In this document: positions 3,622-49,801 of the stretch, one piece after another
Numbering within the stretch: position 1 is the stretch's first letter
Layout: every line of letters begins with the position of its first letter
Sequence record: MW845759.1
Length of the DNA stretch: 64,000 nucleotides
Reading direction: 5' to 3' (one strand)
Translations under genes and position numbers: made by a program
Notes under the pieces: generated by a model
Databases searched by the model: none
Told to the model about the DNA's origin: nothing
The model's input: the letters and a program-made list of their open reading frames with translations, nothing else

Positions 3622-5163
3622 TTAGAACAGGTCGCCGGACATGCCGCCGGTGAATTTATTAATGGAGTTCGCAGTAACTTCGAATTCTTTATCTACATCC
3701 CATGGTAGGATGCAATGGTCTTCAAACGGAATAACCGTGTAGTGGTGTTTTTCTGGCGTGTCGATAATTGTACGGTGCTTACCACGCTGCACTTCTAAAT
3801 AACTGCGCCCTTCAATCACACGCTTGTTGAAGAACATCTCGCCGTCGGCTTCGTTATCCAGAGAGGAGCAGGTGTCGTATAAGCCACGTCCCGGTAACGA
3901 TTTAACGAAAGCCGATTCATCAATCGCTTTCAGGCGTTTACCTTCCGGGCTAATCTGGTGCGGGCCTAACAGGAACCCACGGTTGCGCACTACCTGAATG
4001 TTACGGGCAATACGGTAAATCTCTTTAATGTCGGAACCGGCAATCCCGTTCCCGTGACCGGCTTTGTTGATGGTACCAAAGTAGTCAGCACGAATCCCCA
4101 CGACATGATAGCCACGACGTTTGGCATCGCTGATAAGGTCGTTGAGGTAATGCACTTTAAAATCGGAGTTAGTATGTTTCTGGAACTCATAGTTCCAACC
4201 GTTACGGTTCAGTTTCGAACACACGTAATCGGCCATAACCGAAACATCCTGATTGACCATGTCGGCTTTGGTGCCCTCGAAGTGGCCGTACAGCATCTGG
4301 TATGCGGTCGCGATGTTGATATCGAGTTCGTTCTCCAGAGACAGGTCAAGTATCATCGGCTGCAAATCACCTTTGATATCTTTCATCACGTACTCCGGTG
4401 TGTTGAACACCGGAACCGAAATAGCCATACACAAACTGAACAGTGATTTACAGTTGAACGGCAGAGCCGGCATCAGCCACATCTCTTCGGTAATCCCGCC
4501 GTTGCAACCCATCATGCGGTTCATGGACTGCCAGCCAGTACGTAAACCGTGTCCGGCAGCTTTATCTTTGATAGAACTGAACACCTTCGCAAACGGGGCG
4601 GCGTTCGCGGTGTTCAAAGTGTTAACCAAAGATGGAATCTTATTATGACTACGTTCAGTGAACGTAGAGATGGAATCACGAAGGTTCCCTAATGCGGTGC
4701 TGAGGTCAATACGGGTCTCCGTACCGTTCAGCGCACCAAAGGCTTGGCCCAGTGTCTTACGTAACGTAACGGCATTGAGCGCCTGACGCAATTGGAAGTA
4801 ATGGCGTGATACCATCTTATTGAGGTACGCTACGCGCTCCTCAGGCTTTGTGTCATCCGGTACTTCATCGCCTGCGATAAATTCTACTACGGTATCGTAT
4901 AGGGGGCGATTCTGCGTTGTTGCCAATTTCAATTGGCGCATAGCGGCATCGTGGTCGTATGGAACCTGCCCATCAATAATGGGTTCGATGATAGCTTTGA
5001 TTTCGGTGAGGGCGAGACGTTCGTCATCCTCATCGACATAATCCGGAAGACGAGATTCCGCTAATACCTTTCTTATGACCTCATGATCTGTTTGAGGCTC
5101 GGATAAAAGGCTTTCCGCGTGCAAAGTGGCTAGTGCGGTAATCAACATCGTCTTAATATTCAT
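3622..5163 (-). CDS. dnaB: DnaB-like replicative helicase (phiKZ gp118-like)
   Basis: GLRTGWQSMNRMMG motif, variant Walker A (ALPFNCKS), DYFG, HQIS and QRGKHR motifs; position upstream of the capsid gene as in phiKZ-like phages. Confidence 0.8.
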   Translation of the reverse strand: MNIKTMLITALATLHAESLLSEPQTDHEVIRKVLAESRLPDYVDEDDERLALTEIKAIIEPIIDGQVPYDHDAAMRQLKLATTQNRPLYDTVVEFIAGDEVPDDTKPEERVAYLNKMVSRHYFQLRQALNAVTLRKTLGQAFGALNGTETRIDLSTALGNLRDSISTFTERSHNKIPSLVNTLNTANAAPFAKVFSSIKDKAAGHGLRTGWQSMNRMMGCNGGITEEMWLMPALPFNCKSLFSLCMAISVPVFNTPEYVMKDIKGDLQPMILDLSLENELDINIATAYQMLYGHFEGTKADMVNQDVSVMADYVCSKLNRNGWNYEFQKHTNSDFKVHYLNDLISDAKRRGYHVVGIRADYFGTINKAGHGNGIAGSDIKEIYRIARNIQVVRNRGFLLGPHQISPEGKRLKAIDESAFVKSLPGRGLYDTCSSLDNEADGEMFFNKRVIEGRSYLEVQRGKHRTIIDTPEKHHYTVIPFEDHCILPWDVDKEFEVTANSINKFTGGMSGDLF

Positions 5164-15690: not shown

Positions 15691-17862
15691 ATGCAAAGAT
15701 ACAATATATTCGTTGGGCAATGTATTGACTTGGCAGACTCAATGATTATTAAATCAGAGGCAATTGCCGATGCCATGAACAGGCCCCTAGTGGAGGCGGG
15801 TAAACCCGTCCCCGTGGACAAGTCTCAATGGCGTTATTATCAACATCTTGCCGGTCAGCGGTTGAACACCGACAGTCCGGTGATGATAACGTCACTGGAT
15901 GATCAGAAGTCAATTGAGTTAACGGTTGAGAACCTTGCTCGCCATAAGAAGACTTCTAATGTGTATCGCGCCAATCCAAGCTACATCACGGCCTTGGTGT
16001 CTGATTACCCTGACATGATTGTCTATATTCGGGCGTGCTTTAATCCGATTCCGTTAGCGGAGTCATTGGCCGCACCTGATTGTACCGTTATGCGGTACTC
16101 CACCAAGTTAATCGAAGAGCAAGAGCAGTCGATTATCAGTGACCTGCAGTTGTGGATTCTGGCCGCCCATCGTCGGTGGATGGCAGAAGGCTGGAAAATC
16201 CATAACGATGCCTTTGAAGCAGCGTTCTATGCTCAGCTGTTCCCTCAGCTGCCCGGGAAGATTATGGAACTGCGCATGGCGCGTTGCCACACCCCGGAAG
16301 TGCATAGCTACCATGTCGAAGAGTTCCTGGCCTCGCACCAGAAGCTCAATGAATTCCTCCCGTACCTGACGCCAGCCCAGAAGTTCACGTTGTACCGCAA
16401 CATCCGTTACTGGGAACGTAACACCGGCAAGCACGATAACTTTACGTGGTTGGTTGACGTGTTCCTGACAGGCTGGAACATGCCGACGGTGGCGTATGAC
16501 GTAGGCCAGCAGATTCACGATGCGTCTGATGACGATAACCTGCGTCCACTGCCGGTAGGCTACAAGGTTCCGTTGAACTTCGACGATATTCAAGGGGGTC
16601 GTGACCTGCAACTGGTGTCGACCACGGAGATTATCAATAAAGAGTACGCACTCGCTGATGAGAACTACCTCTATCAAGAGGAGATGCTCAATGAGTTAAA
16701 CGAGAACCTTTCGTTAACCCAGTACCCTGACCAGCCGACCAAGCTGGTTGAGATTACGGCGATTGACCCGGAAGCGATTGAACGTGACCAGTTGGACATG
16801 ACGCTCTTTAATGAGCTGCTCCATCTGGCGTGCTTAGGCCGTTACAACATCCAACACGAAATCATTAACCCGACCACCGGCGACACCATGCGCATGTCAA
16901 CCAAAGAGTTGATTGCTTTGTTCTTGTTCTCCGCGTTCAAAGGTTACTCCGGCATTGAGCTGGAACATATCCCGATTATGAACTGTCAGGGTGTGTTGAT
17001 TAAGCGCTGGGTGACGGTGGATGAACTGATGGCGTTCTTGCCCGAGTCGTACCCAGGGCGTTGGACACCGACGGTAAACTATTACGTCGATACCCATCAG
17101 GAGATTTACAGTAATCTGTTGAGTGCCGATGAGTTTTATGAAGCGGCGAGCAACATTCTTGCAATGAAGCGCAATCGCTGGAAGTACACGCACAACCGCC
17201 GCCGTGACACGGATACTATCGCAGCACAGCTGCTGTATCAGTATTACTATCGCAGCTACAAGTGCGACTTAAAACTCAACTACGAGGATTACACGCAGTT
17301 CTTTGCGAAGTTTGCAATGGACTACGAAATCATCTCGTCAGAGTCGTGGGCGGATATCGCAGTGGATGCGTTCAACATCCTGACTGCGTATGAAACCAAC
17401 ACATCAGTGACCCAAAGTGAAATCCAGCGTGCGATGGTCCGTCTGTTAACCATGCTGTCGTCGTACACGGTTCACTTTGCCACTCGAATGGCATCTGACT
17501 CCTTTATTGTAACGGAACCCGTTGTAATCAAGCCTGACGAAACCATGATGTCAGCTTCTTTGGGTGAAATTATCATTCAGGAAGCGCTTGAGCCGATTGA
17601 GCGCAACATAAAGGCTCGTGGGAATATTGAAGTCGATTCGCCGATGCCTGACGTGGTCGAGGTGAACATTCCCCAGAACTTTAACTTCTTCTTTAACATG
17701 CGTCCCCGTATCGAGATTGTCGTCGACGCCAAACTGGATGTCGTCATTGAACATCCGTTGGTGCATGCTGACATTACGGAGATTGAGCGTATCTCGTGGG
17801 ATGATAGGCTTCTCGTGGACCGCGTGCTTATAAGAGATAATGGGCCGTACACCGTGCCGTAA
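15691..17862 (+). CDS. virion structural protein (phiKZ gp128-like, probable baseplate)
   Basis: About 723 aa; HSYHVEEFLASH, LYRNIRYWERNTGK and MLSSYTV motifs; synteny with the portal. Confidence 0.7.
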   Translation: MQRYNIFVGQCIDLADSMIIKSEAIADAMNRPLVEAGKPVPVDKSQWRYYQHLAGQRLNTDSPVMITSLDDQKSIELTVENLARHKKTSNVYRANPSYITALVSDYPDMIVYIRACFNPIPLAESLAAPDCTVMRYSTKLIEEQEQSIISDLQLWILAAHRRWMAEGWKIHNDAFEAAFYAQLFPQLPGKIMELRMARCHTPEVHSYHVEEFLASHQKLNEFLPYLTPAQKFTLYRNIRYWERNTGKHDNFTWLVDVFLTGWNMPTVAYDVGQQIHDASDDDNLRPLPVGYKVPLNFDDIQGGRDLQLVSTTEIINKEYALADENYLYQEEMLNELNENLSLTQYPDQPTKLVEITAIDPEAIERDQLDMTLFNELLHLACLGRYNIQHEIINPTTGDTMRMSTKELIALFLFSAFKGYSGIELEHIPIMNCQGVLIKRWVTVDELMAFLPESYPGRWTPTVNYYVDTHQEIYSNLLSADEFYEAASNILAMKRNRWKYTHNRRRDTDTIAAQLLYQYYYRSYKCDLKLNYEDYTQFFAKFAMDYEIISSESWADIAVDAFNILTAYETNTSVTQSEIQRAMVRLLTMLSSYTVHFATRMASDSFIVTEPVVIKPDETMMSASLGEIIIQEALEPIERNIKARGNIEVDSPMPDVVEVNIPQNFNFFFNMRPRIEIVVDAKLDVVIEHPLVHADITEIERISWDDRLLVDRVLIRDNGPYTVP

Positions 17863-32669: not shown

Positions 32670-32705
32670 GATGCGCGTCCTGACTTCGGTCAGGACGACA
32701 TCAAT

Positions 32706-41492: not shown

Positions 41493-41512
41493 CCCCGCTT
41501 CGGCGGGGTTTT
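41493..41512 (+). terminator. intrinsic terminator (UUCG loop)
   Basis: ccccgc-ttcg-gcgggg-tttt. Confidence 0.75.
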
Positions 41513-41520
41513 ACTTATAA

Positions 41521-42420
41521 ATGGAAATAACGAAAATGACCCGTCAAACGTTTCAAGTGCCCGTAGCGTATACCATCATCAAACCGACCGATGGCGTAAT
41601 GGGCGATCTTATCCCTTCCATCAACAAATGGTCAGCGCAGAAGACCGCACATCTTGCAGGACCCGGCGTAAAACTGGAAGCGCTGAAAGAGATCGCCATT
41701 AACAACGAAACTAAACAATGGCGCATTACTGGTCGCGAAGCTATTAACGGCGACGTGTGGTTCTGGATGCCGCCGACGGCGTTGGTGTTTGACCATGAAG
41801 TCGTGGGTCAGACTACCTACCCGCGCGATGTCCCACTGTTCACCATTGCAGAGTGCGTCGATAACGTAGTTGGCTGGTCTACCGCACGCGGCATTCTGGA
41901 AAACGGACGCTGGGCTACACAGGTCACCAAGTTCTATGAAGAAGACGGTGAGGCAGCAACCGGTATCAGCAAAACCAAACGTCAGTACATCATGGACGGC
42001 ATTGGTGACGCGCTGGTTGTGATGGTAAACGTCATCAGTCTGGCGGGCGGTAATGCGAAAGCGATCGCGCTGGAAGTAGAACGTCTGCCTGAGCGCCTGC
42101 TGCCGTATCCGTCCGGTGATGCTCACCGCCTGTTCCACAAAATGCGTCTGTACTCAACCCTGATGCACGAAGCACTGTACATCGGTTGTGACCTGCTCGG
42201 TCAACACGACGGTAAAGGCTATCAGCTGGACACCCGTCAGGATGACATCTACCGCGAGTTTGAGAAAAACATGCGTGAAGCCATCTGCTATGCAAATGCA
42301 CTGGCTAATGCGTACGACATGACGCTGGAGCAATGCTTCTCGCTGGCGTGGGACGAAATCAAAGACCGTAAAGGTTTTCTGAACGCTGACGGTATCTTCA
42401 TCAAAGAAGCCGATGCGTAA
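41521..42420 (+). CDS. MazG-like nucleotide pyrophosphohydrolase with extra N-terminal domain
   Basis: KFYEEDGE, MDGIGDALVV and LEQCFSLAWDEIKDRKG (all-alpha NTP-PPase motifs). Confidence 0.75.
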   Translation: MEITKMTRQTFQVPVAYTIIKPTDGVMGDLIPSINKWSAQKTAHLAGPGVKLEALKEIAINNETKQWRITGREAINGDVWFWMPPTALVFDHEVVGQTTYPRDVPLFTIAECVDNVVGWSTARGILENGRWATQVTKFYEEDGEAATGISKTKRQYIMDGIGDALVVMVNVISLAGGNAKAIALEVERLPERLLPYPSGDAHRLFHKMRLYSTLMHEALYIGCDLLGQHDGKGYQLDTRQDDIYREFEKNMREAICYANALANAYDMTLEQCFSLAWDEIKDRKGFLNADGIFIKEADA

Positions 42421-42486
42421 AAAACAACAATAACAACTGGGCGATGCGTTATGTGTCGCCCCTTTTATTTTTTTGAGGATTCAACG

Positions 42487-43935
42487 ATGAATATCATCAT
42501 GGAGTGGTATAACCTCCTGACCGACTCGATGAAAGCATACCCTGCCCTACAAGCAGCTTTCTTAACGGTGATGTCGGGTGGTGTAATGGCAGCAGTGGGG
42601 TTTGCTTTAGTGCGCCTACCTCGCTCAGTCGCCACCTTCTTTCGTAATCAGTGCCTCACCTCTTTAGTCTTCAACACAGCGTCTTCCGGTTGGTCGGACT
42701 ACAACCAGATGCAATACGTGGCCTTCATTAAGTGGTTCTCGAAGAATCGCTGGTTTGGCTGGTCGCGTACTATTACTTTTGATTCAGATGGTCGCAAAGA
42801 TGGCGATGGGGTCGGGCCGGGTTTAGGTCGCCACTTCTTCTTCCATAACTGGCGTCTGTTTATCTTTGCCATTCACGAGATGGACTCGCAGGGCACGAAC
42901 AGCCAGAAATATAAAGTTAGCCTGTCTTGTGTGGGCCGCTCGAAGAAACCGATTTACGCGGTAATGGAAGAGTTCATGGTCAAACCTGACCGTGAGAACC
43001 GTATCGGGGTTTACCGGAACGGTACGGATGGGTGGAACTGGGTCACCTACGCGAACAAACGTTCTCTGCGCTCGGTGATTATGTCACCGGAGCTGGAAGA
43101 AGATTTAGTCGGTTCCATGACGAACTTCATTAATAACGAAGCGTGGTATCGTGAACGCGGCCTGAACTACAAACTGACCTATCTGCTCTACGGTCCTCCG
43201 GGCACCGGTAAAAGCTCACTGGGTCGTGCGCTGGCTTCCCACTTTAACCGTGACCTGTATATCCTCAGTCTGTCCGAGTCCTCAGACCTGCTCACTTTGT
43301 TGCAAAACGCCAAAGGTGGAATGGTGCTGATTGAAGATATCGACGGATTCAGTGCGGCGCGTAAACGTTCCTCGAAGAAGAACCAAGTCGAGTCTTTGAA
43401 CTCTCCGAAGTCATCTGTACAACCGATGAAATTCGACGGTAATGGCGAACAGATTGCAGAGTCTCAGTCGCCGTCTAAGAACCTCGAAGACATCATGGCT
43501 GAATGGGGTGGGATGAACACGTCAGCGCTGCTGAATGCGTTAGACGGCGTTGTAGGGTTGGATGACGTGATTATCCTCCTGTCAACTAACCATCCGGAGA
43601 AACTCGACCCTGCTCTCATTCGTGACGGTCGTGTGGACATCCGTGTGGAAGTTGGTTTCCTGCGTTCTGCTGAGATTCGCCGCTACATTAATCTGTTCTT
43701 CCCAGACTACGTAATCCCCGAAGGGATGACCTTTGCCGATATGCCGGGTTGTACAGTTCAGCGTCACTTCATGGAGAACAAAAACAACCCTGAAGGTTTT
43801 GTGCAGGCGTTGTTGGATGCATCAGACGGCGGTAATTTCACGACCAGTCCGATTCGCCCAGAACTTGCTTTCAGTGAAGCAAACAACCGTTATCTGGTCG
43901 ACCCGGCTGCGCCTAAGGAGGCCGTCAATGCTTAA
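42487..43935 (+). CDS. BCS1-like membrane-anchored AAA+ ATPase
   Basis: N-terminal TM; GPGLGRHFFF; WYRERGLNYKLTYLLYGPPGTGKSS; LIEDID; LLNALDG; TNHPEKLDPALIRDGRVD. Confidence 0.85.
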   Translation: MNIIMEWYNLLTDSMKAYPALQAAFLTVMSGGVMAAVGFALVRLPRSVATFFRNQCLTSLVFNTASSGWSDYNQMQYVAFIKWFSKNRWFGWSRTITFDSDGRKDGDGVGPGLGRHFFFHNWRLFIFAIHEMDSQGTNSQKYKVSLSCVGRSKKPIYAVMEEFMVKPDRENRIGVYRNGTDGWNWVTYANKRSLRSVIMSPELEEDLVGSMTNFINNEAWYRERGLNYKLTYLLYGPPGTGKSSLGRALASHFNRDLYILSLSESSDLLTLLQNAKGGMVLIEDIDGFSAARKRSSKKNQVESLNSPKSSVQPMKFDGNGEQIAESQSPSKNLEDIMAEWGGMNTSALLNALDGVVGLDDVIILLSTNHPEKLDPALIRDGRVDIRVEVGFLRSAEIRRYINLFFPDYVIPEGMTFADMPGCTVQRHFMENKNNPEGFVQALLDASDGGNFTTSPIRPELAFSEANNRYLVDPAAPKEAVNA

Positions 43936-44152
43936 ATACTTAAGCTGGGCTTTGCTTGAACTCTTCATGTTTGTATTGGTGGGTGCCGGTATGGTTCTGT
44001 CGATTCTACCGGCGCTTTGTTTCATGATTGGGTTCGCTGGTCAAGAGCGTGCTGAGTTCGAACGTGTTAAGCTGCGCTCTGAATTAGGCATCCGCTGGCG
44101 CGAGCGTAATCGGGCAGCTGCACAACGGGAGTGTGGTAAACGTCCGAATTAA
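43928..44152 (+). CDS. small membrane protein, 74 aa
   Basis: AAGGAGG RBS inside the AAA gene; long hydrophobic N-half and basic C-half. Confidence 0.7.
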   Translation: MLKYLSWALLELFMFVLVGAGMVLSILPALCFMIGFAGQERAEFERVKLRSELGIRWRERNRAAAQRECGKRPN

Positions 44153-44200: not shown

Positions 44201-44689
44201 ATGGATAATATCGACTTGACTCAACTCGAGTCACACGACTACGACCTCGGAGTTCGACATGAGTCTGGTGCGACGGCAGATGTGTTGCTGGCGCGTTACC
44301 ATGAACTCTTTACTGGTACCGACGGTGGTGACCAAGTATTGACGAACTTCGAAAAGTTGTTAATTGCACTGGTTCGCAGCGACGGTGAAAACTCCGCTAT
44401 GCTGACCGAGCTGGGCTTTGGTGACATCTACGCATCAGACCTTCAGGCAATCCTGCAGCAGTCCATCGTCCCCACTGATGAGATTCAGGATAAGGCAATG
44501 ATGTTGCGTGGGCAGCTCGAAGAGTTGGCTGATGAGTATGTTGAGCATCTCAGCGGGTTAAACACCCACGGCCCACGTGGGGAACAACTACCCAGTGAAG
44601 AACAGACTGCCGCGTACAAACGCCGCTTAGCGCTGTACGTTGTGGCCTCTTTGCTGACGGCCATTCCTGAAGACAAGGATGATGCGTAA
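44201..44689 (+). CDS. hypothetical acidic protein
   Basis: GAGGA RBS before ATG 44201. Confidence 0.75.
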   Translation: MDNIDLTQLESHDYDLGVRHESGATADVLLARYHELFTGTDGGDQVLTNFEKLLIALVRSDGENSAMLTELGFGDIYASDLQAILQQSIVPTDEIQDKAMMLRGQLEELADEYVEHLSGLNTHGPRGEQLPSEEQTAAYKRRLALYVVASLLTAIPEDKDDA

Positions 44690-44720
44690 AATTTTTACAG
44701 ATAGATATTATCTGTATGAA
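44687..44720 (+). promoter_or_regulatory. putative early promoter
   Basis: aaaatttttacagatagatattatctgtatgaa matches the early motif family. Confidence 0.6.
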
Positions 44721-44755
44721 CCAAACACATAAACCTTTTAAATGGAGTATTTCAG

Positions 44756-45088
44756 ATGCAAGAACTGATTAAGATTGTTGGCCTGCTTCCGGTTAAAGAT
44801 GGTAAATCTGAACTGCGCGTTCTGGCAGTGAAAGGTAGTGAGTTTACTATTGCTGCTGACCCGAAAGGGGAAGTGGGTGGGCTGACCGGTATTCGTGAGT
44901 TTACCATCGAATCGCCAACTCTGAAAAAGCTGGGTATTAAGGCCAACGAATCTGCGTATCTGGTTGCAGACGAATCGGCTATCGATAACGCCTACGATCT
45001 CGAATACACTGCGCCGGCTAAAAAGGTTGCATCTGAATCTGTCGGTAAAGGCCGCGGTGCGACCCCGAACTTCAGCATTCAGCGCTAA
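44756..45088 (+). CDS. hypothetical early protein, 110 aa
   Basis: GGAG RBS; monocistronic between a promoter and a terminator; biased codons. Confidence 0.8.
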   Translation: MQELIKIVGLLPVKDGKSELRVLAVKGSEFTIAADPKGEVGGLTGIREFTIESPTLKKLGIKANESAYLVADESAIDNAYDLEYTAPAKKVASESVGKGRGATPNFSIQR

Positions 45089-45096
45089 GCAGTAAA

Positions 45097-45136
45097 TAGG
45101 TAGTCCTTCGGGGCTACCTAGCTCTTTATTATTTTT
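45097..45136 (+). terminator. intrinsic terminator (UUCG loop)
   Basis: taggtagtcc-ttcg-gggctaccta plus T tract. Confidence 0.8.
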
Positions 45137-45152: not shown

Positions 45153-45656
45153 ATGACAACGGTATTCGTTTGTAATGACTTTATCGTCGCTGACCGTGTG
45201 TTGACTCGGGGCGATGAAACCATTCACACCGACTTTCAAAAGCTACATGTGAATCGGGACAAAACTATTGCGATTGCTGTCGTGGGTAACGTGAACTTCC
45301 GTAACCACCACAAGACGGCTGCCGACCATTTCTTTAAGGTGGTAGAGCAACGCTACATCGGTATCCCCGAACCAATGCTGTCTAAGAATGATGTCGCGGT
45401 ATTGGGTGACCTGCAACTCTATGTGCTTACCGCGCTGGATGTGTTCGTCATTACCCGTGACCAGAACGTACAGTGGGTCGCAGACGGTCAGGTCGAAGGT
45501 GCTGGTACCGGCTTCCCGTTAGCGTGCGCCGCTTACTCATTAGGCGCAAAGCCCGAGCACATCATCCCCTTAACGGCGAAGATTGACCCGATGTCTTCCC
45601 GGATGTTTAATATCGTGTACCGTAGTGAACTCAAACGTATTGCACTGAGGAAGTAA
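45153..45656 (+). CDS. HslV-like Ntn-hydrolase peptidase
   Basis: MTT N-terminus, VADR, QKL, AVVG and GAGTG (GSG-like) motifs. Confidence 0.65.
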   Translation: MTTVFVCNDFIVADRVLTRGDETIHTDFQKLHVNRDKTIAIAVVGNVNFRNHHKTAADHFFKVVEQRYIGIPEPMLSKNDVAVLGDLQLYVLTALDVFVITRDQNVQWVADGQVEGAGTGFPLACAAYSLGAKPEHIIPLTAKIDPMSSRMFNIVYRSELKRIALRK

Positions 45657-46958: not shown

Positions 46959-47037
46959 AAATTTACATTTACACCCCTTACTTTGTGTAAGGGGTTATTA
47001 CTGTTTTGCATGCAATAATAAAAATGTAGAGGATACA

Positions 47038-47358
47038 ATGAAAAAGAAACTGCTGCTACTTCTGCCGCTGATTGCGCTGGCAGGGTGCGATACTGCTCCA
47101 ACGAACACGTATCAGGATCAAGCGTTACGTCGCGACATTTTCAAAGAGTGCTTAGCGTCGATTCCAAAAGGTCCGGAAAAGATTGACAACTCGAACGACT
47201 GGCAAGAAGTGGTTGAAGAGTGTGGTGACCAAGCAAAGAGTATGTCTTCTTTTAACGTGGAGATTCCGGGTAACACTGGTGGTCAAACCTATTACTACAA
47301 CCAGAACATTAAAAGCGGCGAAGAAAAGCCACGGGAAAGCTGGAAAGCACAACCATGA
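47038..47358 (+). CDS. lipoprotein 1
   Basis: MKKKLLLLLPLIALAG-C lipobox; GAGG RBS. Confidence 0.85.
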   Translation: MKKKLLLLLPLIALAGCDTAPTNTYQDQALRRDIFKECLASIPKGPEKIDNSNDWQEVVEECGDQAKSMSSFNVEIPGNTGGQTYYYNQNIKSGEEKPRESWKAQP

Positions 47359-47612
47359 AAACAACCTTACTCGCTGTCTCCATCGCAGTAATGACGCTCA
47401 CTGCATGTGACCAGAATAAACCGCAGGCTGTCTATCAGACCGATGAGTCTAAAGAAGAACGGCTGTATCTGGCGTGTCTGGAAGCCGTAAAAGTGAAAGT
47501 AAAGGCAGGTGAAGACAATCTTGAAGATGCTATCACCTCGTGCCGTACTAACGCGAACGTCCTTTCCTCTAAACTGGTCTATACCCATGCGAATGGTAAA
47601 GCTGCTCATTAA
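47355..47612 (+). CDS. lipoprotein 2
   Basis: MKTTLLAVSIAVMTLTA-C lipobox; start overlaps the lipoprotein 1 stop. Confidence 0.85.
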   Translation: MKTTLLAVSIAVMTLTACDQNKPQAVYQTDESKEERLYLACLEAVKVKVKAGEDNLEDAITSCRTNANVLSSKLVYTHANGKAAH

Positions 47613-47700
47613 GGCAGGCGCTTACACTGTCGGCTCTGCTGCCGTGGCTGTAGGGTCCGCATTTTGCGTGTACCTGCTCTCGTATTACGTCATCGTTTAA
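47587..47700 (+). CDS. possible small membrane peptide
   Basis: MRMVKLLIKAGAYTVGSAAVAVGSAFCVYLLSYYVIV; weak RBS. Confidence 0.35.
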   Translation: MRMVKLLIKAGAYTVGSAAVAVGSAFCVYLLSYYVIV

Positions 47701-47746: not shown

Positions 47747-49801
47747 ATGAAAGGCAAAAACGGCATTATGTCACCTATCGAAATGGTATCCGTTTTCGAT
47801 AAGTCTGTTCGCGGTCAGGAAGAAGCGAAGCGTCAGCTTTCTATTGCGCTCTTTAACCGCCACCGTCGTGCAAAGCTCCCTGCCGACGACCGCAAGTTTG
47901 TTAAGAAGCAGAACATCCTTATCGAAGGACCAACCGGGTCGGGTAAGACTGCGTTAATGCGAGTGCTGCGCGAAGACTTCGGTCTGCCGGTACTGGAAGT
48001 GGATATCACGGAATACAGTGAAGCAGGTTATCACGGCAAGTCTGTCGATGACATGATTAAAGAGCTGCAGGAAATCGATATCCGCGTACCGAAGTGGTTC
48101 AACGAAAAGCCGGAAGTGAAGAAAGGGGATAAACCTAAAGTCACCGACCTGACGCCGGTGGACAACGTAAAGCGCGATGCCGATTCTGCAAAACGCATGT
48201 TAACCACACTGCGTATTTTAGCGGTCGGTTCAGTGGGTGGACGACTTTACGGAATGCATATCTTCCGTGATATGGATGCGGCCTCTCGCTTATATTCAAC
48301 CGTTGAGCAGTACGTTGCCGAGGAAGCGAATTTCTTAATCGAGTTCTTTAACCGTGGGGTTGATATTGTAGAAAACCAATCCATCGGGTTGCAAGACAAA
48401 CACAATGTCTTTGCGAACGATTGTGAATCGGTATTTGCCCCGATCGTCGGCGAAACGGGCACTGTGTCACTAGAGATGTCGAGCGCGTTCAAAGACAAAT
48501 ACGGTTTAGGTGACTATACTGCCCAGCGGCTGTTGGAAGAGCTGAGTGGTTATGACGTGTCCGACTTTGGCGCGCTGTGGGATATCAAAACCACCATCGG
48601 CGAGATTAAAGAATGGCCATCGAATGATATTGCCGCCGAGAAAAGCGGGTTCTATCGTGAACGCTTAAAGGCGACGTTGGTCGGGTATTTCTTCCGTTCG
48701 TTGATTGCAGGTCTGATTAAGACCGGCGACAGCAAGGTAGAAGACCATGCCAGCAAAACCATGGCGATGCAGAGGTACAACGGTAAAGACATGGCGAAAG
48801 AAGTAGCGTCTATGTTTGGTCTGGGTATGGATGCGGGGGCACAGTCGCAGGAGAAGTTAAAGGAGTATCTCCGGGCTGGCATGCCGTGTATGGCGCAGGA
48901 ACGTGTGTTGCAGTTAGGCCGCAGTTTCCGGTCGTGGACTAATCAGCTGGCTAAGCTCAAACGGGTTGATGGATCAAAGGTTATTTTCCCGCCTAAGATG
49001 ACTTCAGCGTGGGAAGAGCTGAAAGACATGTCGTTCGACGAATTCTGGAAGCAGGCTACTGCAGAAATTAGCAAACGTAGCGTTAAACAAATCCGCGAGG
49101 ATGTGCAACACGCCCCGTTAATTTTCGCACCGGTTGGGGATGCACCTGACTTCGGTAGCATGACCTTCCGGCCGGGTCGTCCTGACTTCCCAATGGGCGG
49201 TATGGGTGGGTTGTTCGGTATGATGCGTGGTGGTCCACGTGTGGGTGGTGACAGCAAAGAGTTCCTTGAGAACTTTGCTGTTATCTTCATTGACGAAATC
49301 GACAAACTGATTCAGGAACCGGGTCGTTCAGGCGATGTCTCTCGCATGGGCGTACAACGTGGCCTGCTGAAGTTAGTAGAAGGCGGCGTCTATAACGGCA
49401 TCGACACCTCTAACATTCTGTTTGTGGGTGCTGGTGCGTTCTCGGGCACCTCCCCTGCGAAACTGCTACCTGAACTGGTCGGACGTTTCCCTATCCGAGC
49501 TCGTCTTAAAGCACTGAACAACGACGACTATGTCGCCATCTGTAAACTGGAACGTTCCCCGTTCAACATGTACATCAAAATGTTGGGCACGGACGACGTG
49601 AAGGTTAAGTTCGACGAAGATACTTACGTATACATTGCTCAATTGACTGAGCTTGAGAATCAAGAGTTCAATCTGGGCGCTCGCCGTATCGAAGGCATCA
49701 TCGAGCGTGTTTTTGCACCGGCCATGTTCGAGCCGGAGAAATACTTAGAACACGGGTTCGACATCCGTGGTGAAACACTCCGTAAAACCTTAAGAGGCTA
49801 A
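47747..49801 (+). CDS. hslU: HslU-like Clp/Hsp100 AAA+ ATPase with enlarged I-domain
   Basis: GQEEAK, NILIEGPTGSGKT, GYHG pore loop, IFIDEIDK, VQRGLLKLVEG, ILFVGAGAF, PELVGRFP and GARR motifs. Confidence 0.85.
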   Translation: MKGKNGIMSPIEMVSVFDKSVRGQEEAKRQLSIALFNRHRRAKLPADDRKFVKKQNILIEGPTGSGKTALMRVLREDFGLPVLEVDITEYSEAGYHGKSVDDMIKELQEIDIRVPKWFNEKPEVKKGDKPKVTDLTPVDNVKRDADSAKRMLTTLRILAVGSVGGRLYGMHIFRDMDAASRLYSTVEQYVAEEANFLIEFFNRGVDIVENQSIGLQDKHNVFANDCESVFAPIVGETGTVSLEMSSAFKDKYGLGDYTAQRLLEELSGYDVSDFGALWDIKTTIGEIKEWPSNDIAAEKSGFYRERLKATLVGYFFRSLIAGLIKTGDSKVEDHASKTMAMQRYNGKDMAKEVASMFGLGMDAGAQSQEKLKEYLRAGMPCMAQERVLQLGRSFRSWTNQLAKLKRVDGSKVIFPPKMTSAWEELKDMSFDEFWKQATAEISKRSVKQIREDVQHAPLIFAPVGDAPDFGSMTFRPGRPDFPMGGMGGLFGMMRGGPRVGGDSKEFLENFAVIFIDEIDKLIQEPGRSGDVSRMGVQRGLLKLVEGGVYNGIDTSNILFVGAGAFSGTSPAKLLPELVGRFPIRARLKALNNDDYVAICKLERSPFNMYIKMLGTDDVKVKFDEDTYVYIAQLTELENQEFNLGARRIEGIIERVFAPAMFEPEKYLEHGFDIRGETLRKTLRG

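Follow-up and report, generated by a model that had tools for sequence, protein, structure and literature searches.

Window positions 42487–43935 (plus strand) of the Erwinia jumbo phage pEa_SNUABM_38 carry a gene, listed in GenBank as a hypothetical protein, whose product we regard with high confidence as a true Bcs1-family AAA+ ATPase, i.e., a protein with a membrane anchor, the Bcs1-specific middle domain and an intact AAA module. The window is the whole 64,000-nt stretch of record MW845759.1 (224 kb, Derbicusvirus) that was analyzed, window position + 62000 gives the position in the record, and feature coordinates are collected in Table 1. The end of the ATPase gene overlaps a second gene, which encodes a membrane protein of 74 amino acids (aa). 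Our best explanation of the whole, which we judge probable by a modest measure, is a stand-alone phage Bcs1-family ATPase that acts in a Bcs1-like manner and has a lineage-specific small neighbor. A Bcs1-like translocase role in jumbo phages is not new, having been proposed already in 2021 (PMC7824862); what is added here is one more family member together with its small neighbor—confirmation rather than discovery.

Family membership of the phage ATPase

An initial annotation, made from the sequence alone, had claimed the Bcs1 layout for this protein, and each of the features that it listed is present, including the GPGLGRHF motif, W220, Y221, the Walker A sequence GPPGTGKS (236–243) and TNHPEKLDPALIRDGRVD. 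The profile search that it had suggested as a check also came out in its favor: Pfam BCS1_N (PF08740) matches the ATPase with 38.2 bits against a cut-off of 28.1 (residues 108–197). Searched at the genome level, the same profile has a single copy in pEa_SNUABM_38 (39.3 bits) and none in 14 control prokaryote genomes, and Pfam AAA (PF00004) scores 65.6 bits on the ATPase. When the protein was compared with sequences in the PDB, the top five matches were mouse and yeast Bcs1 (E 6e-34 to 5e-31, residues 111–292 and 341–440); the next ones (Cdc48, p97, AFG2) reached only 1e-18, over 47 residues.

Conservation among 63 homologs points in the same direction. In the middle domain, G114 is invariant and G112 and H116 are near-invariant (all within the GPGLGRHF motif), while in the AAA module G236, P238, G239, G241, K242, D284, N368, R379 and R382 are invariant and E283 nearly so. 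Walker A, Walker B, sensor-1 and the arginine fingers are therefore invariant or nearly so, and the protein should, as judged from its sequence, hydrolyze ATP. The spacing between Walker B and the LLNALDG helix is about 54–69 residues in the phage clade vs 16–38 in most eukaryote-type sequences.

The predicted fold agrees with the sequence matches. An AlphaFold2 model built from the 63 homologs (mean predicted local distance difference test score, pLDDT, 83.8) retrieved Bcs1 at ranks 1–13 in Foldseek (best E 1.4e-28, 469 aligned columns), and the next entry was YjoB from Bacillus subtilis. In VIA-align the model superposes on Bcs1 with Z of 22–23, residues 2–448 of the model lying on residues 1–419 of Bcs1, and the root-mean-square deviation to the ATP-1 state of Bcs1 is 3.5 A over 333 residues. 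The middle domain (model residues 56–180) is covered by Bcs1 and YjoB chains only, the alignments of other AAA proteins beginning at about 170–180. The central claim of the initial annotation, a phage gene for a membrane-anchored Bcs1-type ATPase, is thus borne out by the Pfam matches, the PDB search, the fold match and the conserved active site.

A hydrophobic N-terminal segment equivalent to the anchor occurs in 90 of 120 homologs. The charges that flank it, read from the sequence, are net -1 before and +3 after, and by the positive-inside rule they suggest an N-out/C-in orientation, in which the short N-terminus would be periplasmic and the ring would sit at the cytoplasmic face of the host inner membrane.

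Mitochondrial Bcs1/BCS1L (yeast and mouse; PDB 6SH3, 6UKO, 8TP1, 9GS2) has the same build, i.e., an N-terminal membrane helix, the beta-rich Bcs1-specific domain and one AAA module, and shares with the phage ATPase the motifs GxGxH, WY..RG, the ED-type Walker B, LLNALDG and TNH..LDPALIRPGRVD. The predicted orientation is the same as well, with the ATPase on the N side (the cytoplasm being the equivalent of the matrix). Identity between the two is 24–29%, and, unlike Bcs1, the phage protein is extended after Walker B by about 45 residues of low complexity and ends in a disordered C-terminal tail.

The family is widespread among phages: tblastn found matches to the ATPase in 162 phage records, which span phiKZ-type, PhiPA3-type, Noxifer, Psa21, Munch-type and FBKp24-type phages, AH04, pEt-SU and the 142-kb phiTE. 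In PHROGs it corresponds to phrog_7485 (function unknown there), which matches residues 1–458 at E 7e-171, and some GenBank records label the family “mitochondrial chaperone.” The phiKZ ortholog, gp286, has the same domain order and is 34% identical over two blocks, with an insert after Walker B some 60 residues longer than that of the pEa_SNUABM_38 protein; identity is 42–45% for AH04, pEt-SU and FBKp24. These orthologs share the N-terminal anchor and are encoded by accessory genes among small genes of unknown function, whereas the overlapping gene for a small membrane protein is found in the Derbicus-like clade only.

In a quick, unrooted FastTree of 118 sequences, most of them unlabeled metagenome proteins, all eight named phage proteins group to one side of a branch (local support 99%), and the sequences with a eukaryote-type lid, including the named fungal ones, fall on one side of another (100%). 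Because the tree is unrooted and mostly unlabeled, it shows only that the phage gene does not appear to be a recent capture from a eukaryote.

Iyer et al. (2021; PMC7824862) had earlier reported BCS1 orthologs from all three major groups of jumbo phages and proposed for them a role in membrane-proximal assembly, in which they would translocate folded proteins. The family goes unmentioned in recent jumbo-phage reviews, and a 2026 review of the Tat system treats Bcs1 as a mitochondrial invention (PMC13673990). With their intact catalytic sites and the same anchor, the phage homologs would place the Bcs1 design at bacterial membranes too, a point that likewise goes back to 2021.

The 74-residue neighbor and its lineage

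The last 8 nt of the ATPase gene contain the start codon of the second gene (ATG at 43928; ATGCTTAA). As the initial annotation had it, this small gene overlaps the ATPase stop and is preceded by a strong AAGGAGG ribosome-binding site; it is annotated as a 74-codon coding sequence in the records of four phages (pEa_SNUABM_38, CR5, Phobos and EarlPhillipIV). Equivalent ribosome sites occur in CR5, in Phobos and in L068, a metagenomic relative whose ATPase is 78% identical and whose small gene is a 64-codon version with the same start context. The transmembrane segment and basic tail claimed for the product are likewise apparent, in a hydrophobic N-terminal half, a tail with 11 K/R vs 6 D/E and an AlphaFold2 model consisting of one unbroken helix (residues 2–68, pLDDT 83.6). 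Since that helix is continuous, the protein is read as single-pass and not as a hairpin. The 74-aa gene is real and co-translated; its product is a basic-tailed membrane protein of the single-pass type. The protein is predicted to lie N-out/C-in; as the ATPase is predicted to lie the same way, the basic tail would face the ATPase ring.

The relatives of the small protein form a narrow set. Its PHROG, phrog_24453, matches at E 1e-39, and identity falls from 92% in CR5 to 47% in Phobos and 46% in EarlPhillipIV and Derbicus; a tail motif, WRE..RA..Q..CGKRP, is kept in whole or in part in all these orthologs and in that of L068. Two further metagenomic contigs (L066 and L067; ATPase 67 and 59% identical) encode a 71–72-aa membrane protein with a basic tail, perhaps a diverged homolog, which follows an inserted open reading frame (ORF). 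This inserted ORF (89–90 aa, soluble) overlaps the end of the ATPase gene in both contigs (3852–4121 in L066, 3849–4121 in L067), at what is otherwise the coupled junction. In L069 (ATPase 66% identical), a 273-aa gene stands directly downstream in place of the small gene. A tblastn search with the small protein up to E 1 found five Derbicusvirus phages only, a word search of 5.8 billion proteins returned the protein itself and one 89% relative, no Atlas score exceeded 0.8, and scans of curated family models (Pfam, NCBIfam, PADLOC) gave no match. A holin-like identity was considered. The protein is small and has a single transmembrane helix with a basic tail; next to its gene no endolysin or spanin gene was identified, the flanking genes being that of the ATPase and one for a functionally uncharacterized 162-aa protein. 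The small gene originated in the Derbicus-like lineage and is fast-diverging.

Fast divergence is also seen at the DNA level. Most 90-nt windows between 41.5 and 45.6 kb have 0.82–0.98 identity to EarlPhillipIV; identity drops in a hot spot that covers the ATPase C-terminal tail and the small gene (Table 1) and is back to 0.88 at 44125. The ATPase as a whole is 94% identical to that of EarlPhillipIV, the small protein only 46%, and the last ~30 residues of the ATPase vary alongside it. The pattern resembles that of a short cassette that underwent allele replacement or diverges fast. While this may suggest pressure from host interaction, it is not specific, since mosaic patches occur elsewhere in the region, e.g., 42156–42326 vs CR5.

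The initial annotation had further described the two genes as coupled and had named their co-occurrence across phages as a check. The coupling stands as a matter of translation in this genome; the co-occurrence does not extend to the family. We scored, in all fetched loci, a small membrane ORF starting -60 to +200 nt from the ATPase stop. Such an ORF follows the ATPase in seven of eight Derbicus-like loci, L069 being the exception, and in 2 of the 11 motif-identified Bcs1-like loci outside the clade; in four further loci that the motif missed and that were inspected by hand (AH04, FBKp24, phiTE, Munch) there was none. For other ORFs no shorter than 150 aa, the background frequency of such a follower is 23/215 (10.7%). 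The IMG/VR loci were collected with a generic P-loop pattern and are mostly distant AAA genes, some of them from giant-virus bins, and so serve as a rough outgroup sample. Two such bins, L021 and L030, have very hydrophobic 55–63-aa ORFs after Bcs1-like genes (3941–4108 and 3786–3977, respectively), which is within background expectation.

In the named phages outside the clade, the neighbors are unrelated to the small gene and to one another. Downstream of the ATPase, phiKZ (gp286.1), AH04, Noxifer, phiTE and Munch have soluble proteins or long gaps, FBKp24 has a terminator and an opposite-strand gene, and no PHROG is common to the ATPase neighbors of the six distant phages. We considered and rejected gp286.1, a soluble protein from another PHROG, as an analog of the small gene, and also a conserved upstream partner: the MazG-like gene upstream of the ATPase has no similarity to phiKZ gp285 and is absent upstream in L066 and L067. 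With unrelated neighbors and an outside frequency at background, the pair is explained by one origin in the Derbicus-like lineage, and the ATPase is a stand-alone accessory gene with no neighbor conserved across the phage clade.

These data bear directly on whether the ATPase and the 74-aa protein form a dedicated module, as the initial annotation proposed, the small protein being an adaptor or else a substrate for insertion, extraction or transfer by the ring. The arrangement of the genes invites this idea—they overlap by 8 nt, a strong ribosome site is embedded in the ATPase coding sequence, and the tight coupling is kept in CR5, EarlPhillipIV, Phobos and L068—as do the shared predicted topology, the conserved C-terminal motif (a sign of selection on the tail) and the joint divergence of ATPase tail and small gene. 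Joint divergence, however, is expected of adjacent DNA, and gene overlap alone says little, because overlapping junctions are common in pEa_SNUABM_38 (~11 of 31, about a third, in the annotated stretch). The restriction of the small protein to Derbicus-like phages, the ORF between the two genes in L066 and L067, the missing small gene directly downstream in L069 and the background frequency elsewhere all argue further against a module, which we consider fairly unlikely. The most that can be claimed for the small protein is the role of a client or adaptor within this lineage, and it may be no more than a neighbor; it is nonetheless a concrete and cheap first candidate for either role.

Candidate functions of the phage ATPase

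Bcs1 is the only AAA+ machine known to carry a folded protein across a membrane. By analogy with it, the phage protein would form a ring that takes hold of a client, folded at least in part, at the cytoplasmic face and that, at the expense of ATP, carries it across the host inner membrane or inserts it there. We put forward this translocase or insertase mechanism tentatively, as the likeliest of those considered but one that falls short of probable. The client cannot by default be taken to be the bc1 Rieske protein as in mitochondria; Enterobacterales generally lack a bc1 complex. Knowing the client would bring to light a new step in the infection by jumbo phages.

Several observations weigh against the Bcs1-like account. 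The BCS1_N match spans profile positions 84–182 only, i.e., the second half of the model, and the Bcs1 lid model (PF25426) scores 13.1 bits, under its Pfam cut-off of 27; the precomputed Pfam lists of the nearest homologs do not contain this family, and the structural alignment to Bcs1 extends through residue 448. Bcs1-like architecture by itself is also no proof of translocation, since a bacterial relative, YjoB, is a soluble chaperone-like AAA+ ATPase that lacks a membrane anchor of the phage type. The N-domain and AAA module of YjoB (PDB 7W42) align with model residues 58–447 at Z 17.8 and 17% identity, a weaker match than that of Bcs1. Finally, the sole interaction data on the phiKZ ortholog lead in another direction: PHIKZ286 co-fractionates with 70S ribosomes and cross-links to RplL, RplK and RplJ, proteins of the L7/L12 stalk (PMC10449902).

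The last observation, obtained by size-exclusion chromatography and cross-linking mass spectrometry, raises the possibility that the protein acts in translation or on early phage proteins, as a ribosome-associated AAA+ factor at the membrane (e.g., in co-translational handling). Knock-down of phiKZ 286, which is listed as non-core, with antisense oligonucleotides left the plaque- to colony-forming unit ratio (PFU/CFU) unaffected and was scored “effective” in reducing the ChmA level (PMC12571901, Table 1), which fits such a role. These published data concern phiKZ, whose protein is 34% identical to the one studied here, and no client was identified in them; the cross-links come from one study of one phage. 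A large ring of a membrane protein may, moreover, co-elute with ribosomes by size, domain scans of the ATPase suggest no RNA or ribosome binding, and phiKZ gp285, which shares an overlap with gp286 and likewise turned up with ribosomes, lacks a homolog upstream of the ATPase. On this evidence a translation role seems quite improbable.

The same knock-down speaks to the idea that the ring is a membrane-proximal chaperone of virion assembly, binding folded phage proteins and handing them on to be packaged in the head, as proposed in Iyer et al. (2021; PMC7824862). Bcs1-type rings do handle folded clients, and the family is widespread among phages with large, protein-filled heads. Yet the gene stands among small early-type genes of unknown function, not in a structural module; its phiKZ ortholog is non-core, and plaque counts are not lowered when that ortholog is knocked down; the family reaches down to the 142-kb phiTE; and evidence from virion proteomes was not found. 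We therefore hold this role to be distinctly unlikely.

An accessory status would suit a role in conflict with the host, the second suggestion of the initial annotation, in which the ATPase would extract host complexes or membrane-bound defense effectors from the bilayer. A phiKZ transposon-sequencing preprint finds the region from about orf184 to orf304 largely non-essential (orf286 is unnamed in its text), and this region has been proposed to hold host-interaction and defense-related functions; the small gene beside the ATPase is a divergence hot spot, as arms-race genes would be; and there is a weak local similarity to IetA, the ATPase of the anti-phage system IetAS, near the P-loop (PADLOC, 41.7 bits over residues 193–259; NCBIfam NF042959, 34 bits over 197–259). 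The IetA match nevertheless covers only ~65 of 482 residues, its 34 bits stand against a cut-off of 510, and no IetS-like protease partner is present, and we rejected an identity with IetA. As Bcs1 is not known to extract membrane proteins and mosaic hot spots are common in the region, an extractase or counter-defense function is very unlikely.

Returning to the Bcs1-like translocase, its strongest form would be that the phage rings provide a route, independent of Sec and Tat, by which large phages move folded phage proteins through the bacterial inner membrane or insert them there, with the 74-aa protein as the adaptor or first client of the Derbicus-like lineage. We find this combined proposal unlikely. 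If true, this would make it the first Bcs1-type translocase shown to work in bacteria; how the mitochondrial branch of Bcs1 and that of the phages are related would then become a question.

Locus organization and nearby genes

In DNA sequence the phage is related to Cronobacter phage CR5 and to the Erwinia phages EarlPhillipIV, Derbicus and Phobos. The ATPase start is 42487, on which the GenBank annotation and the initial annotation agree. A longer ORF (42451–43935) would start within the upstream hairpin and T-run; it is because the hairpin and CTTTTATTTTTTT fill 42439–42474, and because GAGGA stands 7 nt before the ATG, that the shorter version is held to be right. The next strong plus-strand terminator-like site comes only at 45097–45135, so that the ATPase, the 74-aa gene and the two genes that follow (44201–44689 and 44756–45088) probably form one transcription unit.

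Table 1. Features of the ATPase locus of pEa_SNUABM_38 (window coordinates).
Feature	Position	Strand	Details
Terminator-like hairpin (10 bp stem, 6 G-C), then CTTTTATTTTTTT	42439..42474	+	Directly 5' of ATPase gene
GAGGA ribosome-binding site of ATPase gene	42475..42479	+	7 nt 5' of ATG 42487; read from sequence
Bcs1-family AAA+ ATPase gene, 482 aa	42487..43935	+	pEaSNUABM38_00119, annotated hypothetical protein; phrog_7485; phiKZ gp286 ortholog
Transmembrane anchor, residues 21–44	42547..42618	+	Kyte-Doolittle peak 2.02; AlphaFold2 helix 19–56
Bcs1-specific middle domain, residues 57–200, beta-rich, GPGxGxH motif	42655..43086	+	Pfam BCS1_N match; structural alignment
AAA module, residues 201–447	43087..43827	+	Walker A 43192–43215; Walker B IEDID, E283 at 43333; sensor-1 N368; arginine fingers R379, R382
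Low-complexity Ser/Lys-rich insert, residues 293–340	43363..43506	+	Between Walker B and LLNALDG helix (pore-loop-2 position); low pLDDT
Disordered C-terminal tail, residues 448–482	43828..43932	+	Houses small-gene ribosome site; varies within genus
Divergence hot spot	43856..44124	+	DNA identity to EarlPhillipIV 0.44–0.54 (90-nt windows); spans ATPase C-terminal tail and small gene
AAGGAGG ribosome-binding site of small gene	43915..43921	+	Within ATPase coding sequence; 6 nt 5' of ATG
Small membrane-protein gene, 74 aa	43928..44152	+	pEaSNUABM38_00120, phrog_24453; hydrophobic residues ~13–36; basic helical tail, conserved CGKRPN end
Two more genes	44201..45088	+	162 aa, phrog_8221 (44201–44689); 110 aa, phrog_24003 (44756–45088)
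Next strong terminator-like hairpin and T-run	45097..45135	+	

Downstream of this unit lie two genes of protease type. A gene for an HslV-family peptidase (45153–45656; phrog_1040, E 1e-23) begins 1.2 kb from the ATPase gene, and a 684-aa ATPase (47747–49801) has an AAA_2 domain split by ~400 residues (P-loop near 55, the rest at 509–586), which resembles HslU with a very large I-domain; no homolog of the latter was found in phiKZ, Noxifer, Munch, AH04 or FBKp24. The proximity of the peptidase suggests that it and the Bcs1-type ATPase could make up a membrane-tethered two-component protease, and a similar arrangement recurs in phiKZ, where gp289, also phrog_1040, is 2.1 kb from gp286, and in Noxifer, where the two genes are 4.4 kb apart. 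They are, however, ~40 kb apart in Psa21, D6 and RVTF4, and AH04, FBKp24 and phiTE carry the ATPase with no peptidase; pEa_SNUABM_38 has an HslU-like ATPase of its own, and a terminator-like site separates the units. The rings would also differ in symmetry, those of Bcs1 being heptameric and those of HslV hexameric. We consider a link to the peptidase extremely unlikely and rejected it, treating the two as separate modules.

Two adjoining small genes between the peptidase and the HslU-like ATPase (47035–47358 and 47355–47630) begin with lipoprotein-type signal sequences (…LIALAGC and …VMTLTAC) and are followed, before the HslU-like gene, by a short and very hydrophobic ORF, a cluster of exported or membrane proteins.

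Upstream of the ATPase, a MazG-like pyrophosphatase gene (41521–42420; phrog_7855, E 1e-113) has terminator-like hairpins on both sides (41493–41508 and 42439–42474). In contigs L066 and L067 this gene is missing from that position and a T4_Y16D-family gene directly precedes the ATPase instead; the MazG-like gene resembles a one-gene unit that was inserted.

The word TTTATTTTTT occurs eight times in the window, at sites that include 2947, 8060, 12582, 23605, 37092, 42464 and 52622. At 42464 it follows a G+C-rich hairpin just 5' of the gene start, and a related word, TTATTTTTTC, holds the same position at sites near 32705 and 45129. Such recurring punctuation might act as a terminator, as a phage promoter element or as both. 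For TATATTAC, a putative early-promoter word of phiKZ, there were three matches, none near the ATPase gene and not above chance.

Elsewhere in the record and outside the window, single-sequence queries with phiKZ chimallin and PicA gave no match in pEa_SNUABM_38. The chimallin profile phrog_4795 has a weak match (E 2.3e-9, 32 bits) at record positions 16399–16974 of MW845759.1, in an open frame of 610 aa, which is the size of a chimallin; Derbicusvirus may be a divergent nucleus-forming lineage.

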